Assembly: GCF_006345805.1 (NCBI RefSeq)
Contig: NC_043026.1
Span: forward strand, 8,432,001 to 8,496,000
Reading direction: 5' to 3'
From: Octopus sinensis
Lineage: Eukaryota
Length of the DNA stretch: 64,000 bases
In this document: positions 1-64,000 of the stretch, one piece after another
How positions within the stretch are numbered: position 1 is the stretch's first letter
How the letters are laid out: each line of letters opens with the position of its first letter
Translations under genes and position numbers: made by a program
The notes under the pieces: model-generated
What the model saw: the letters and a program-made list of their open reading frames with translations, nothing else
The model's database searches: none
Told to the model about the DNA's origin: nothing

Positions 1-951
1 GGGTTTCTTTGGTTATGAATTCGTATTTTATTCTATTCTCTTCCCAGTCAATGACGTATATGGTCCGACCAAACATTTCTACACCTATAAGCGTAGAATG
101 TTCCAAATAAGAAACCAAGATTAATCCTAGCTGAATTCTTTTGATTTCCAAACTTAAAGGGTTGATAATAAGAATCATCTTTCGAAATGGGAGGGTGGCG
201 AGGACTGTGTCTTCACTGATTCTAGTAAAATCAGTGACAGAAGATGAGCAACGAACATCGTTTCTGTTGCCGTCTCTTGTTATACAACATATTGTCATAC
301 AGTGGCGGGAATATGTTACAATTCCCCCTTGTATGACAACAATATTGGATATGGGGTTGCTTAAGTCTTCACCAGATTCCTCAATCTTTGCTTCTCTGGT
401 CACAACTGGCTGAAGAGGCCGAAATTTTGTGGTTAGTTTGGTGGTTCAATGGTCTTGTGTTTGTCTTGTAAAACATTTTTGGTTATGTATTGTTCCAGAA
501 AATATTCAAGTTTTCCTAAAATATCAAAGTCTTGACTATGATAATATTTCTTAAAGTCTTTCATCAGAATTTCTATTCTCTGTGTAAAATGTTTTAGAAA
601 AGTATTTTCATCCATTCCAATTTTTTTTAAAAAAGTACATATTTCTTTCCGAGAATTTATCAACAAATCAATTTTTTCGTCATAGGCATTGAATCTTGTA
701 TAAAATATGTGTTTGTCCAAAATATTTCGTCTTCCCATTATTTCCCAGTTTTTAGGGTCTCCTTTATGTTTTTTTTTTGTTGTTGGCTGAGATGAAGATC
801 GTTTCTCGGACATTTCTCTCCTGAACCGTCGTCTCTCTCATATTACACCTTTTATTGTCAACTCCTTCTTCATCCCATTTTGGTGTCGAGTTCCTTAAAG
901 CCCTTTCAGAGGGATAAGTTTCCTTAAAGTATTTTCAGTCTGGTCTTCCAT
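1..951 (-). pseudogene. Multi-propeller family copy 1, 5' part (runs off window); four 1-nt A-run deletions disrupt the frame
   Basis: ATG at 951 gives MEDQTENTLRKLIPLK as in copy 3, preceded by the same acceptor TTTCTTTACAG (959-960). Single A missing versus copies 2/3 near 903, 843, 822 and 437. After the last one the frame reads FRPLQPVVTREAKIEESGEDLSNPISNIVV...FITKET to the window edge. Confidence 0.85.
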
Positions 952-1360
952 AGTGAATCTGTAAAGAAATATAAGGAAAACATTTAGCTTTGTGAAAATA
1001 TTGAAGTTTCAGGGAGATGATGTTTGCTTCATCATTTGAAAAACACAAACAAAACATTTATGTATTTCTGTCAGTTAATTAATCTTGTCTAATTAATATT
1101 TAAACAGGTTTGCCATAGAATAATGAATAGAAATGAATATCATGTAGTCCTTAAGCAAGCTACTTACCACACAGCCACTCCTACGCCTAAAATATTTGTT
1201 AAAATATCTTTGATTAAATATTTTATATATTTCTTTACCTTGCAGACCCACAGAGTTAAAATGTATACTAGACTTTAAAAGAAAAACCAGAAACCCTGAG
1301 GTTTATGTAATCAATATATATCAGTATATAGACATGTATGTATTATGTATACATATATAT

Positions 1361-1814
1361 AGGCGCAGGAGTGGCTGTGTGCCAAGTAGCTTGCTAACCA
1401 GCCACATGGTTCCAGGTTCAGTCCCACTGCGTGGCATCTTGGGCAAGTGTCTTCTGTTATAGCCCCGGGCCGACCAATGCCTTGTGAGTGGATTTGGTAG
1501 ACGGAAACTGAAAGAAGCCTGCGTATATATGTGTATATATATATATATATATATATATATATATATATATATATATATATATATATATATGTATGTGTGT
1601 ATGTATTTGTGTGTCTGTGTTTGTCTCCTAGCATTGCTTGACAACGGATGCTGGTGTGTTTACGTCCCCGTCACGTAGCGGTTCGGCAAAAGTGACCGAT
1701 AGAATAAGTACTGGGCTTACAAAGAATAAGTCCTGGGGTCGATTTGCTCGACTAAAAGACGGTGCTCCAGCATGGCCGCAGTCAAATGACTGAAACAAGT
1801 AAAAGAGTAAAGAG
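1361..1814 (+). mobile_element. tRNA-derived SINE family A with internal (TA)n/(TG)n
   Basis: A-box-like TGGCTGTGTG, B-box-like GGTTCAGTCC, body CCTTGGGCAAGTGTCTTCT, 3' end GACTGAAACAAGTAAAAGAG; more than 10 copies in the window. Confidence 0.85.
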
Positions 1815-1833
1815 TATATTTATGTGAATATGT

Positions 1834-2289
1834 AGGCACAGGAGTGACTGTGTGGTGGGTGGCTTGCTTACCAACCACATGGTTCCAGGTTCAGTCCCAC
1901 TGCGTGGCACCTTGGGCAAGATTTGGTAAGTAGCTTGCTTACCAACCACATGGTTTTGGGTTTGGCAAGTGTCTTCTACTATGGCCTCGAGCCGACCAAA
2001 GCCTTGTGAGTGGATTTGGTAGACGGAAACTGAAAGAAGCCTGTCATATATATGTATATGTATATGTGTGTGTGTGAGTGTGTTTTTGTGTGTCCATGTC
2101 TGTCCCCCCACATCGCTTAACAACCGGTGCTGGTGTGTTTATGTCCCCATAACTTAGCGGTTCGGCAAAAAGAGACCGATAGAATAAGTACTGGGCTTAC
2201 AAAGAATAAGTCCTGGGATCGATTTGCTCGACTAAAGGTGGTGCTCCAGCATGGCCACAGTCAAATGACTGAAACAAGTAAAAGAGTAA
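1834..2289 (+). mobile_element. SINE family A with duplicated head
   Basis: Same consensus; the GCTTGCTTACCAACCACATGG head segment occurs twice (about 1860 and 1930). Confidence 0.8.
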
Positions 2290-60516: not shown

Positions 60517-60750
60517 TTATTTGTCAAAATAAAAGAAAGCAAAAGATTGACGTCCAGGAATAATTCCAAAAACCATCAAAGAATTGTCTGAAACATCCAA
60601 ACCAAGAACTTCAAACACTTCATTATCATCCCCTCTGAGGAGTAAATATTTTGGATTATCTTTTAATCCCTGGATTTCATCATATTCAGATGTTTCCTCT
60701 TCAATATGTCGAGGTATTTCGTAAATATTGTTCTCTAAATCTGTTATATA
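60517..60750 (-). pseudogene. C-terminal stub of a further family copy (last ~78 codons, stop and 3' flank)
   Basis: YITDLENNIYEIPRHIEEETSE...LLLRGDDNEV.EVLGLDVS.NSLMVFGIIPGRQSFAFFYFDK*, closer to copy 3 than to copy 5. Confidence 0.9.
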
Positions 60751-60942
60751 AACACATATACATATACTGTATATAAATATACACACACACACAAAGAGAG
60801 TGTGTTGAGGAATGTTACAACACTAAGTGTTAGTGTGTAGAATGCAATGTATGCGATGCAGGTTCGATTCCCAGGCAAAGCCATTTACAACAACAACAAT
60901 AAGAAGAAGAAGAAGATTGAAGCTTAATATTTCTGAAAATAT

Positions 60943-63900
60943 TTATTTGTCAAAATAAAAAAAAGCAAAAGATTGACGTCCAGGAATAATTCCAAAAACC
61001 ATCAAAGAATTGTCTGAAACATCCAAACCAAGAACTTTGTAAACTTCATTATCGATACCTCCCAGGAGCAAATATTGTTGAATATCTTCAGATGTTTGAT
61101 GTTCAATATGTCCAGGTATTTGGTAAATATTGTTATATCTGTCTACTATATACACATATTCACCTTGTGTAGTTAGATAATGTCTATGGATGTTGTTGTA
61201 TAGATATCTTGGTAGTTTTATACTTCTGACCAAATGTTCACTAAACCAAATGACATCATAGGCATAACCACTCCAGTATCTCTCCCGCTCTTCCTTCACA
61301 ACGACAATATCTCCACCAGATGTCACTACTATATCCAACACCACCTCTATCTCCTCCTTCTTTCTCAGCCAAGAGCACACTTTATGAATGTATTTACATA
61401 CCTTTCCATCAATAGCAATTACATCTACATAATAGGAAGACCAGCTTCTACATTCAGTCATGTCTTCAATATAAGGACCACCACCACCACACACGAGTTG
61501 ATTGTCGTTGTATTTATAAATCCTGTTGTAGAATTTCTTAGTTTTGATGGTTTTTAAACGACGGAGATCCCTGTTGAAGAACATCAGTTCTTCACCAAAG
61601 GCGACAATGAAACATTCCTCTTTCCACCAACATATGTCCAGTGGTAGTTGTGGTAGTTGTTTATGTTGAAGTATGTCCACTGTTGTTGTTGTTCTGATTA
61701 ATGTGACACTTTCTCGAAACATCAACACACTCACATTCTCATCTAACTTAATTAGTTTACTATTGTAATCTCTACTGTCTTCGATATCATAATTAACAGG
61801 TTCAGTGCATGTAGGAATGGAAAAAGGGACCATTGCTGTCCGATATGGAAGTCTCCTCACTGATATTTCATCAATTCCTGGCTTACTCTCCGCTATGTAA
61901 TTACCACATCTCACCTTTAATCTACTTTTACCAATTATTTCACCTGATTTACCTCTTTCCACTTCATCTCCGCCACTGTATTCCAATTTATTAATTAATT
62001 CATTACTGAATATTTCCTTATTCGTTTCAGATGTAATGGAAGGGAAACGAAGACCAGAATCAAGATTTGATAATGACACAGATTCCAGAATGTTCACTTG
62101 GTCCCCATCAATCTTTATGCAATGACATTCAATCAATTCAATATGTGCACACCAGTAAATATTTCCCACTTTTCTCCATATCACACCATAAGGTACTTGA
62201 CTTTCCCAAACTTTATATTTCCCCAAATTTTCTTGCTTCAGTTGAAATATTTCTCGTCTGTTAGGGACCGTGACCATTATGCCTCTTCCATGTGTAAAAC
62301 ACACACCACCAACTAAACTTCCTAGATCTCTGTGGCATAGCAATTCCCCATCTCTATCAAACATTTTAACATTTCCATTATTGGCTTTTTCACACACAAC
62401 TGTCTTTCCTTCATCAGAGATGTCAATATCTTTCACCTGAACAAGACATTCGTCTGTTTGTAAATGACAAACAGGGAATTTTTCCCGATTAAGCTGAAAC
62501 AAACCTTCAACATACAATTTATCTTTGTTGTGGCTCCCAGCAAAACGTGGACCATTACAGTTTATACTTGTGAAATCTATTTTATCTTTATAAATTCTAC
62601 TATTTATAAATATTCTGTTGTATTCTCCTGTCTGTGTCAAACAGACTAAGCTGTTATAGCCAGTGAAATCACCATAACGATCCCACCATCCATAAATGTA
62701 CAAATAACTGTCATCAATTGTCATGTTGTTGTATTTAATATCATCATAAGCCATGTAGTGTCTAACTGAATGCAAATACTGACCACCACTGTTGAAGAAT
62801 ATTATGAATCTTCTATTGCTGACAATGATGACACCATTAGCAGTAACTATAATATTACAGATGTAATTAATAAGTCCACGTCTGTCTTTCGTTAATGTCT
62901 CAGGTATGCCTATTTGTTTTATTATATTCACGGTTGAATGTTTTTCGTCTATAACGATAACATACAAATTACATTTATCTCTATATTTACTACACAACAG
63001 TTGATTGTTTGATAAAGAAGCAATACATTTATATTCATTTCTTGTCAGGTAGGTTACCGACGACAATGGGAACCCAACTTTTAAAGTCAACAATTGGGAC
63101 TTAGCACCATAAGTTGTAATGACCAGTGTGTTTCTCTGCCAACGACACATATTAATAGGAAAAACATTCAATTTGATAGAGTCCACAAGTTGACCGTCAA
63201 ATGTGAATATCTTAATGTTTTTATTATTCCAGTCATATGACGCTATCAGGTTATTTTCAATAACACACAAACGGCGAATGTACACTGGTTTTTGGTCTCC
63301 AAAACCTGAAGGGACAACGACATGTCTAGCTTTGTCAGAAACTGTCAGGTCCTGTAGATATAAAGTGGAAGACAACATTTCACTGACAGAAATGTTTCTG
63401 GAAAATACATCCACCAGGTCGATATAATAATTAAGTTGATTATTTGTAACGAGATCATTAACTAACAAATTATGATTGTTTATGGCAAACATACGGCTTC
63501 TGTCTATCAGATAAACAAATATTTTATCAATAGATCCACCGCAGAGATTGAGGGGACGTTTCACTTGGGACATTAAAACACTGGGGACCATCTTACTACT
63601 ACTATAACCACCACCACAGATACTAGTGTTGTAATGAAAGGCTATTTTCCTAGTAACAATTAATAATTTTCGTGTTTCATTTTCTATTGCTAATGATTTC
63701 ACAAACACAGGGATATTAATTGTCTTAAGTACTTCGACTTGATTATAATAATTGATGGCTAAAATATCTAAATGTGATGGATTATCACAGTAACAAACAA
63801 TTTCACATTCACCCATCTTACACACCCGTACATAAGGCTGCCTTAATGATACACTTCTCACTGTCTTTGATAGGTTTCCGATGACCCTTAATTGTTTCTG

Positions 63901-64000
63901 TAGGGGTAATGTGACCCCTATATGATTAGAACCCCACTAACATATATCTGTGGCTGTAGACAGCAGAGATAATCTGGGCACAATGTCTCCTTCCTCAGAA
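60943..64000 (-). pseudogene. Multi-propeller family copy 5, 3' part (propellers 3-6), in-frame TAG at 63937-63939; continues off window
   Basis: ORF 60943-63861 ends in SFAFFYFDK*; the upstream frame reads SEEGDIVPRLSLLSTATDIC*WGSNHIG, where the other copies have Q, R or R. Confidence 0.8.

Follow-up and report, generated by a model that had tools for sequence, protein, structure and literature searches.

A 64-kb stretch of the Octopus sinensis genome (contig NC_043026.1, positions 8,432,001 to 8,496,000 of the forward strand; hereafter the window) contains six copies or remnants of a large gene, the intact one of which encodes a protein of 1819 amino acids (aa). We interpret the window as part of a tandem array that belongs to a gene family specific to octopods, whose products comprise six NHL-derived units and would act as multivalent binding scaffolds, a reading to which we assign a probability of roughly 60%. 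The genes form a real protein-coding family that is partly under purifying selection, and structure modeling depicts the product as a series of tandem β-propellers. Within the known NHL propeller superfamily, both this architecture and this lineage-restricted family are new.

We defined copies by tblastn with the 1819-aa open reading frame (ORF), nucleotide self-comparison, and pairwise alignment to the intact gene, copy C (Table 1). These searches returned the order (-)(+)(+)(+)(-)(-) given by the original prediction, which had been made from the DNA before this analysis, and copy C was indeed recovered as a single ORF in one exon, with a stop codon that overlaps an AATAAA sequence (42586-42595). 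The other five copies are broken, and this ratio of one intact gene in six agrees with the birth-and-death evolution that had been proposed for the locus. Very long ORFs of 1453, 1819, 1188, and 972 aa encode paralogous products within this AT-rich window (GC 30-41%); the 1819-aa and 1453-aa products were not found as called gene products in the assembly collection, and the intact gene may lack an annotation.

The lesions that disable the broken copies are diverse. Copy B has 90% aa identity to copy C across aa 1-1431 and an open frame over aa 1-1450, with a 7-nucleotide (nt) insertion near aa 1451 and a 1.3-kb 3' deletion, across which homology skips from the equivalent of 41474 to 42779, that removes the last ~370 aa. 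Copy A, which is 84-86% identical at the nt level to 36980-38093, carries six frameshifting indels and yields tblastn high-scoring segment pairs in two frames. Copy D has a premature stop at ~52129-52131, an ORF that restarts at 52156, a frameshift at ~aa 1294, and a further stop; the family member P0004 aligns to it over 51817-55650 in a single frame. The C-terminal remnant retains 87% aa and 93% nt identity, and copy F, at 66% aa identity to the 1819-aa query, keeps a 972-aa open frame with one stop upstream. The long ORFs at 44155-46475 (-) were considered as a further gene copy and rejected, as these are the reverse transcriptase and PHD ORFs of a non-long-terminal-repeat (non-LTR) retroelement.

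The copy C product can be divided into an N-terminal region (module N) and six units, U1 to U6, which begin at approximately aa 202, 453, 719, 984, 1275, and 1508. The start motif by which the units had originally been recognized aligns in all six, and the units match one another in register by profile-profile comparison, with probabilities of 90% (U4-U5), 82% (U3-U6), and 77% (U3-U4) for the best pairs. Ahead of them, the first 75 residues are mildly basic (18 K/R versus 14 D/E), as had been noted, and are likely disordered according to the structure model, in which their predicted local distance difference test score (pLDDT) is ~25. They are followed by a helical domain of ~90 aa (aa 76-162), modeled as four helices at moderate confidence, which can be aligned across the whole gene family and exists in the array as at least two very divergent cassette types. 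This domain has no Pfam or PDB relative; its profile retrieved designed helical repeats and noise alone from those databases. Neither a signal peptide nor a transmembrane helix was seen in the 1819-aa protein, in which the highest 19-residue Kyte-Doolittle mean (1.52) lies within a β-strand, and these features support the intracellular location suggested at the outset. U2 and U3 are consistently basic across paralogues (U2 has an isoelectric point of 8-9), and net charge ranges among paralogues from -32 to +10 in U4 and from -20 to +10 in U6.

We ran AlphaFold2 on two overlapping halves of the protein with a 39-row family alignment (mean pLDDT 63 and 65). U1 is the best predicted unit, with 23 strands (~24, in groups of four), consistent with six four-stranded blades, at pLDDT ~85. 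Approximately 24 strands in groups of four were likewise predicted for U2 (pLDDT ~72) and U4 (pLDDT ~80), and ~20 strands, corresponding to five or six blades, for U3, which ends in a low-confidence tail (aa 927-980). U6 is modeled as a confident β-domain (pLDDT 60-93) with unusually long strands. When both halves were compared with the PDB by Foldseek, the matches were to multi-propeller proteins, including IFT-A, LRP4/LRP2, DDB1, SF3B3, and Utp21 (E 1e-21 to 1e-10), and together the strand pattern and these matches display the four-stranded blades of β-propellers in U1-U4, with U6 atypical. In these models the protein is thus a set of tandem β-propellers, and the fold is clear for four units: six-bladed in U1, U2, and U4, and five- or six-bladed in U3. 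A propeller fold is plausible for U6. The six propellers of the original prediction therefore stand for U1-U4; U5 gave two blades followed by a low-confidence region, and the β-domain of U6 departs from the type. That region of U5 (aa 1351-1483) is well conserved, even in Argonauta.

Searches of Pfam, PDB sequences, and NHL and other families with the full protein returned nothing significant; its best Pfam match is SGL (aa 989-1043, E 0.023, below the cut-off). The basal family member P0047 scores 18.5 bits on Pfam NHL, for which the cut-off is 20. A precomputed PF23381 tag on family member P0032 was not reproduced. We then relied on an exhaustive HMMER search of 1.84 billion representative proteins with a family profile covering aa 448-1560, built from five sequences that included Argonauta. 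Family members were retrieved down to E 2e-10, followed by a gap and then by 13 weak non-family matches (E 8e-6 to 9e-4), all of which fall on the start of U3. Pfam found NHL repeats in seven of the 10 of these proteins that were scanned, three of the seven also having a B-box, and an eighth, from Mytilus, has a B-box and matches propellers only weakly.

Eleven of the remotely matching proteins were aligned and compared unit by unit with hhalign. The resulting probabilities were 96.6% for U1, 87.0% for U2, 99.5% for U3 (a partly circular value, as discussed below), 97.9% for U4, 96.1% for U5, and 85.9% for U6, versus 0.5% for the N-terminal domain, and all six unit matches start with the first propeller blade of the NHL domain. 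In a profile search of the PDB, 12 of 15 matches, all sub-threshold (E 0.02-0.3), were NHL domains of TRIM3, TRIM71, TRIM2, Brat, and Thin, and these were matched by the beginnings of three separate units. Remote homology of every unit to NHL propellers is thereby supported at the level of sequence profiles, as the original prediction of NHL-type propellers held. It had also described the protein as TRIM-less, and Pfam detects no RING or B-box in the 1819-aa protein or five relatives. In NHL domains, one face serves to bind RNA or proteins (PMC4015489, PMC5908797, PMC9634614).

The family appears to be confined to octopods. Two word-indexed searches of 5.8 billion proteins, the second of which used a family profile and added one protein, together with the exhaustive HMMER search, found the architecture only in Octopus vulgaris, O. 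sinensis, O. bimaculoides, and Argonauta hians (38-39% identity), and every family entry is named "uncharacterized" or "hypothetical." No squid, cuttlefish, nautilus, or other animal homologue was found in the searched libraries, whose content of other cephalopod proteomes was not confirmed. A literature search by LOC identifiers and by topic found no paper on the family or on a hexa-NHL architecture. The closest database match to copy C has 92% identity, and the closest paralogues of the window copies lie on O. vulgaris chromosome OX597841.1 at no more than 95% nt identity; none of the loci that we fetched is identical.

A distance tree resolves three tiers. P0047-type members (29-30% identity to copy C; singleton on the 215-Mb chromosome OX597815.1) and P0042-type members (44% identity; singleton on the 119-Mb chromosome OX597822.1) occupy loci whose flanks can be aligned between O. 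vulgaris and O. bimaculoides, and which are thus orthologous. Array-type members (57-87% identity to copy C in the tree) are fast-evolving and reside on small chromosomes or scaffolds. In O. vulgaris, the 29.19-Mb OX597841.1 carries no fewer than 28 distinct gene models, with array members at 9.57, 9.79, 21.87, and 22.02 Mb. The whole coding sequence (CDS) occupies one exon in all members examined, including both singleton types and array genes; some public array gene models add a 5' exon of 2-31 codons.

Several further features of family members were observed. Most array-type members are found on the smallest chromosomes or scaffolds (OX597841.1, O. sinensis scaffolds of 15-21 Mb, and O. bimaculoides contigs of 12-19 Mb), an exception being P0020 on a 127-Mb contig. 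Three O. vulgaris gene models, P0001 (2526 aa, apparently two array copies fused), P0002 (with C2H2 zinc fingers), and P0006 (with DUF4371), look chimeric and are probably annotation mergers with neighboring genes or transposable elements. Low-complexity expansions specific to single lineages also occur: the Argonauta hians proteins P0038 and P0039 bear N-terminal ADNTRM(V/A) heptad repeats and a long (T)PPLQ(Y/Q)H(Y/N) repeat directly ahead of the conserved DIC.W motif at the U6 start, and O. sinensis P0023 has a ~45-aa acidic insert rich in Asp and Asn in U4.

Divergence among array genes differs sharply from module to module. Mean pairwise aa identity is 0.48 for N, 0.70 for U1, 0.78 for U2, 0.79 for U3, 0.61 for U4, 0.80 for U5, and 0.61 for U6, with aa 1601-1780 of U6 forming the most variable cassette. 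In a codon alignment of five intact genes taken from genomic loci (copy C, P0003, P0007, P0010, and P0011), the synonymous divergence (dS) varies ~30-fold along the gene: it is 0.01-0.03 in U5, 0.03-0.12 in much of U2-U3 (U2 0.12), 0.3-0.45 in U4, and 0.4-0.8 in N, U1, and aa 1621-1740, with values of 0.5-0.8 for N, U1, and U6b. Singleton orthologues of O. vulgaris and O. bimaculoides differ by a dS of 0.06-0.10. The dS of U5 is below this value, and U5 has therefore been homogenized after that speciation; the dS of N, U1, U4, and U6 is above it, and those cassettes are therefore much older. The original prediction of constant and hypervariable modules was correct insofar as both kinds exist, but the constancy is a matter of concerted evolution in DNA: homogenization at that level (dS 0.01-0.1), not special conservation of the protein, keeps the constant modules alike.

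The nearest neighbors of a given gene also change along its length, and module trees are discordant. N ranges from 41% to 89% nt identity between paralogues, copy C being 86-88% identical to P0010 and P0011 and 41% identical to P0007. In U1, copy C groups with P0003 (97% nt) and P0007 with P0010 and P0011 (95%), with 75% between the groups. In U4 and U6b, copy C groups with P0007 and P0003 (88-90% nt) and shares 61-77% identity with P0010 and P0011, themselves unlike one another; cassette types share 73-77% nt identity in U4 and 61-65% in U6. U5 is near-identical in all array copies (97.6-99.1% nt). The discordant module phylogenies and the 30-fold variation in dS identify the pattern of the array as one of cassette exchange and gene conversion among paralogues.

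Evidence that these genes retain function comes from the ratio of nonsynonymous to synonymous divergence (dN/dS). Between O. vulgaris and O. bimaculoides, the two singletons have ratios of 0.39 (p 1e-11) and 0.45 (p 4e-6), indicative of purifying selection, and in U1 of intact array genes purifying selection is strong (0.14-0.37, p as low as 1e-15). Old cassette types of U4 and U6b have values of 0.5-0.6, significantly below 1, and recently diverged ones values of 0.95-1.6, which cannot be distinguished from 1. No segment or module of the array codon alignment has a dN/dS significantly above 1, and loops exceed strands only slightly, with no clear enrichment. Ratios near 1 in U4 and U6 beside a constrained U1 are compatible with a mixture of purifying and diversifying selection. 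The open frames themselves are informative as well. Of all point substitutions in the copy C CDS, 5.1% create a stop, such that the chance of the frame remaining open is ~1e-3 at 2.5% divergence and ~1e-12 at 10%; intact paralogues differ by dS 0.2-0.8, and their ORFs are therefore not chance survivals.

The duplicated unit extends well beyond the gene. Positions 14399-22823 match 28192-43234 at 94-95% nt identity, a match that takes in over 3.6 kb of non-coding DNA upstream of the gene, and the flank of copy C is shared at 90-93% identity with a paralogous locus (L003) elsewhere on the chromosome. Since kilobases of non-coding flank were duplicated together with the ORF, the unit of duplication is a genomic segment rather than the ORF alone. 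Neither direct nor inverted terminal repeats flank the gene unit; the only matches were microsatellite-like. A polypyrimidine tract followed by AG, resembling a splice acceptor, lies 8 nt before the ATG of copies C (37104-37131) and B; it hints at a possible acceptor of a 5' untranslated region intron and is absent from that position in P0007, which has the type-B N terminus, and in the singletons.

The spacers and flanks contain repeats and mobile-element fragments, among them additional reverse transcriptase, PHD, and Tc1/mariner debris (Table 1), and no further host gene and no Rfam family were detected in the 64-kb window. The 3' flank of copy C (42620-43240) is dense in microsatellites, namely (CTT)n, (TG)n(TA)n, (CAA)n/(GTT)n, and (CAT)n, and the (TG/TA)n block recurs at the equivalent place downstream of copy B. 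Two older partial copies of the 44155-46475 retroelement (77-88% identity) lie at 25475-26913 and 34093-34953, the latter within the 5.4-kb insertion that precedes the intact gene. An interspersed and tandem repeat family of ~450 bp, with at least eight copies at 70-91% identity, may be a short interspersed nuclear element or a satellite.

Table 1. Features of the window and modules of the copy C product
Feature	Position in window	Strand	Residues of copy C product	Description
Copy A	1-1106	-		Pseudogene fragment truncated at the window start; contains the codons for aa 1-321 and ~150 nt of flank upstream of them
Upstream flank of copy B	14399-18019	+		Duplicated non-coding DNA; 94-95% identity to two blocks of the copy C upstream flank, 28192-30099 and 35492-37131
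Copy B	18020-22381	+		1453-aa ORF; 3'-truncated paralogue without most of U6
Upstream flank of copy C	28192-37131	+		Broken by a ~5.4-kb insertion (30100-35491) with a retroelement fragment
Copy C	37132-42591	+	1-1819	Intact gene, 1819 aa, one ORF
Basic tail	37132-37356	+	1-75	Likely disordered; pLDDT ~25 (<50)
Orphan helical domain and linker	37357-37716	+	76-195	From AlphaFold2 secondary structure
U1	37717-38472	+	196-447	Six-bladed propeller (predicted), best-predicted unit
U2	38473-39267	+	448-712	Six-bladed propeller (predicted), homogenized module, basic
U3	39268-40065	+	713-978	Propeller (predicted), five or six blades, most NHL-like unit
U4	40066-40935	+	979-1268	Six-bladed propeller (predicted), variable cassette
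U5	40936-41631	+	1269-1500	Two NHL-like blades, then a conserved stretch with a Gly-rich linker
U6	41632-42588	+	1501-1819	β-rich C-terminal domain (predicted), long strands, first blades NHL-like
Non-LTR retrotransposon ORFs	44155-46475	-		RVT_1 (E 3e-32), then PHD finger
Tc1/mariner-type transposase helix-turn-helix fragment	48015-48590	+		Spacer; HTH_Tnp_Tc3_2, E 2e-14
Copy D	51817-56450	+		Pseudogene with alternative (type-B) N-terminal cassette; 3' truncated
Separate reverse-transcriptase fragment	57458-57880	+		Spacer
C-terminal remnant	60520-60756	-		237 nt, 79 codons, equivalent of aa 1741-1819
Copy F	60943-64000	-		Divergent paralogue, equivalent of aa 747-1819, cut by the window end
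~450-bp repeat family	1314-3096, 5646-6642, 10003-10542, 27442-27866, 57021-57491			

The units are likely to descend from the NHL-type β-propeller of molluscan B-box/NHL (TRIM-like) proteins, with RING and B-box absent. The family consists of slow-evolving single-copy members at fixed loci and a large array with fast turnover, which grows by segmental tandem duplication, decays by deletion, frameshift, and nonsense mutation, and is continually re-mixed by gene conversion or unequal crossing-over. U2, U3, and U5 stay near-identical between copies, and the N domain, U1, U4, and U6 persist as a few old, diverged cassettes in varied combinations. The protein may be a cytoplasmic or nuclear multivalent binding scaffold in which the constrained propellers, U1 above all, would hold a common partner or function, and the exchangeable N, U4, and U6 cassettes could set variant ligand specificity for RNA or protein, as in NHL domains. 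Given the basic U2 and U3 and the NHL precedent, RNA is a reasonable candidate ligand by analogy.

Several observations weigh against this interpretation. Pfam calls no NHL domain in the 1819-aa window protein, with nothing above threshold; the hhalign score of U3 is partly circular, since the remote NHL set was assembled by similarity to U3 and independently of the other five units; and only the first two to three blades of U5 and U6 are detectably NHL-like. The AlphaFold2 models are of moderate confidence (mean pLDDT 63-65) and derive from a shallow alignment of closely related sequences (39 rows), and in U5 they resolve two recognizable blades, after which aa 1351-1483 fall below pLDDT 50. 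Finally, five of the six window copies are broken and the array-wide dN/dS is ~0.6 (0.6-0.7); many array members may be dead or dying.

The evolutionary mode of the array is also what might be expected of the polymorphic intracellular immune or anti-transposon repertoire suggested by the original prediction; in such a repertoire, variable propellers would sense pathogens or transposable elements under diversifying selection. Clustered paralogues with birth-and-death, as in innate-immune receptor arrays, are present here; cassette exchange is combinatorial; recent U4 and U6b cassettes have dN/dS of 0.95-1.6 versus 0.14-0.37 for U1 of the same genes; the net charge of U4 and U6 swings widely among paralogues; and the nearest non-cephalopod relatives are expanded molluscan B-box/NHL proteins. 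Yet dN/dS nowhere significantly exceeds 1 and is 0.5-0.6, significantly below 1, between old cassette types, and high variability coincides with high dS, so that much of it reflects age or absent gene conversion. Moreover, Pfam and the PDB profile search detected no RING, TIR, death-fold, NACHT, or other effector domain, and no paper on these loci was found in the literature searched; we consider a dedicated immune repertoire unlikely. Were the single-copy members alone functional, the array could instead be a decaying and mostly neutral side effect of unchecked tandem duplication on a small chromosome rich in repeats. Five disabled window copies out of six, an overall dN/dS of 0.6-0.7 with U4 and U6b near 1, spacers filled with transposable-element fragments, and the many partial or chimeric public gene models all fit such decay. 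It sits poorly, however, with the at least six array genes (C, P0003, P0007, P0010, P0011, and the partial P0009) that keep frames of 5.3-5.6 kb open at dS 0.2-0.8, where chance would preserve them with an expectation of at most 1e-3, with the strong purifying selection on U1 of open-frame array genes, and with dN/dS significantly below 1 in old U4 and U6 cassettes, and we judge it quite unlikely.

Two further explanations concern the nature of the protein itself. The one-exon CDS in all members examined and the multi-copy state could be explained if the ORF belonged to a mobile element or endogenous virus, and retroelement and Tc1/mariner debris does lie nearby. But the copies are tandem segmental duplicates with kilobases of non-coding flank in common, no terminal repeats surround the unit beyond microsatellite-like matches, and the singletons occupy orthologous loci with alignable flanks in two species; Pfam finds no transposase, reverse transcriptase, or capsid domain in the protein, and a Foldseek search of BFVD gives generic propellers only, at no more than 14% identity. 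A mobile or viral origin is accordingly hard to credit. It is very improbable that the propellers serve as SGL/lactonase- or PAL-type enzymes instead of binding modules, as might be read from the weak SGL match noted above (aa 989-1043, E 0.023, below the cut-off) and from remote NHL matches that are also weak on SGL, Lactonase, and Vgb_lyase. These families belong to one clan whose members routinely cross-match, and the matches in question are of this clan-level kind; the signal is strongest, and most specific, for TRIM-type NHL domains, and no metal-binding or catalytic motif was identified. To our knowledge, six tandem catalytic propellers would also be unprecedented, which we count against an enzymatic role.

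A multivalent scaffold built from NHL-derived units is best placed by comparison with three kinds of known systems. As in TRIM-NHL proteins (Brat, LIN-41/TRIM71, TRIM2/3/32, Mei-P26, and NHL-2) and expanded molluscan B-box/NHL proteins (such as Mytilus VDI39367.1), which have the six-bladed NHL domain to which the octopod units appear remotely homologous, the octopod protein is apparently intracellular. It is nevertheless not a TRIM-NHL member: it has no RING or B-box, carries six tandem units instead of one C-terminal propeller, falls short of the Pfam NHL cut-off, and is confined to octopods. Where TRIM-NHL proteins have a coiled coil, it has the helices of aa 76-162, with no detectable sequence relation (hhalign 0.5%). 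Strings of β-propellers also characterize its best Foldseek matches, the DDB1/SF3B3/CPSF160 triple propellers, the IFT-A WD40 pairs, and the LRP4/LRP2 YWTD trains, and multi-propeller strings such as those of DDB1, IFT-A, and LRP are used as multivalent platforms. Identity to these scaffolds is at most 12%, with TM-scores of 0.13-0.25, which are low because only the domain class matches. Unlike the octopod NHL train, they use seven-bladed WD40-like or extracellular YWTD-EGF units, and we know of none among them that is an NHL train or is encoded in a tandem gene array. In evolutionary mode only, the closest parallels are plant NLR clusters, fish finTRIMs, and KIR, tandem-array recognition families diversified by inter-paralogue recombination, which share with the octopod array clustered paralogues, frequent pseudogenes, and a mosaic of homogenized and divergent segments. 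Unlike them, the octopod protein has no signaling or effector domain that we could find and no dN/dS significantly above 1.

Cephalopod genomes are known for lineage-specific gene arrays, and most of their novel families are nameless. Our analysis supplies more than 40 "uncharacterized" proteins of Octopus and Argonauta with a name, a domain map, and a probable ancestry among B-box/NHL proteins; they make up a large gene family, with ~1,700-1,900 aa per protein and dozens of copies. Module shuffling is unusually clear in this family, in which constrained and freely varying propellers adjoin within one gene, and it offers a tractable system for studying gene conversion versus diversification in an invertebrate without adaptive immunity. 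A more speculative proposal, to which we attach low odds, is that octopods possess a private intracellular repertoire of dozens of hexa-NHL proteins with recombined N, U4, and U6 modules that surveys RNA, transposons, or pathogens; if true, it would be a recognition system architecturally unrelated to NLRs, TRIM5-like proteins, and VLRs. Should the ligands prove to be RNA, transposable-element products, or pathogens, the family would represent a new type of recognition repertoire; otherwise, it would still be a new family of multi-propeller scaffolds.

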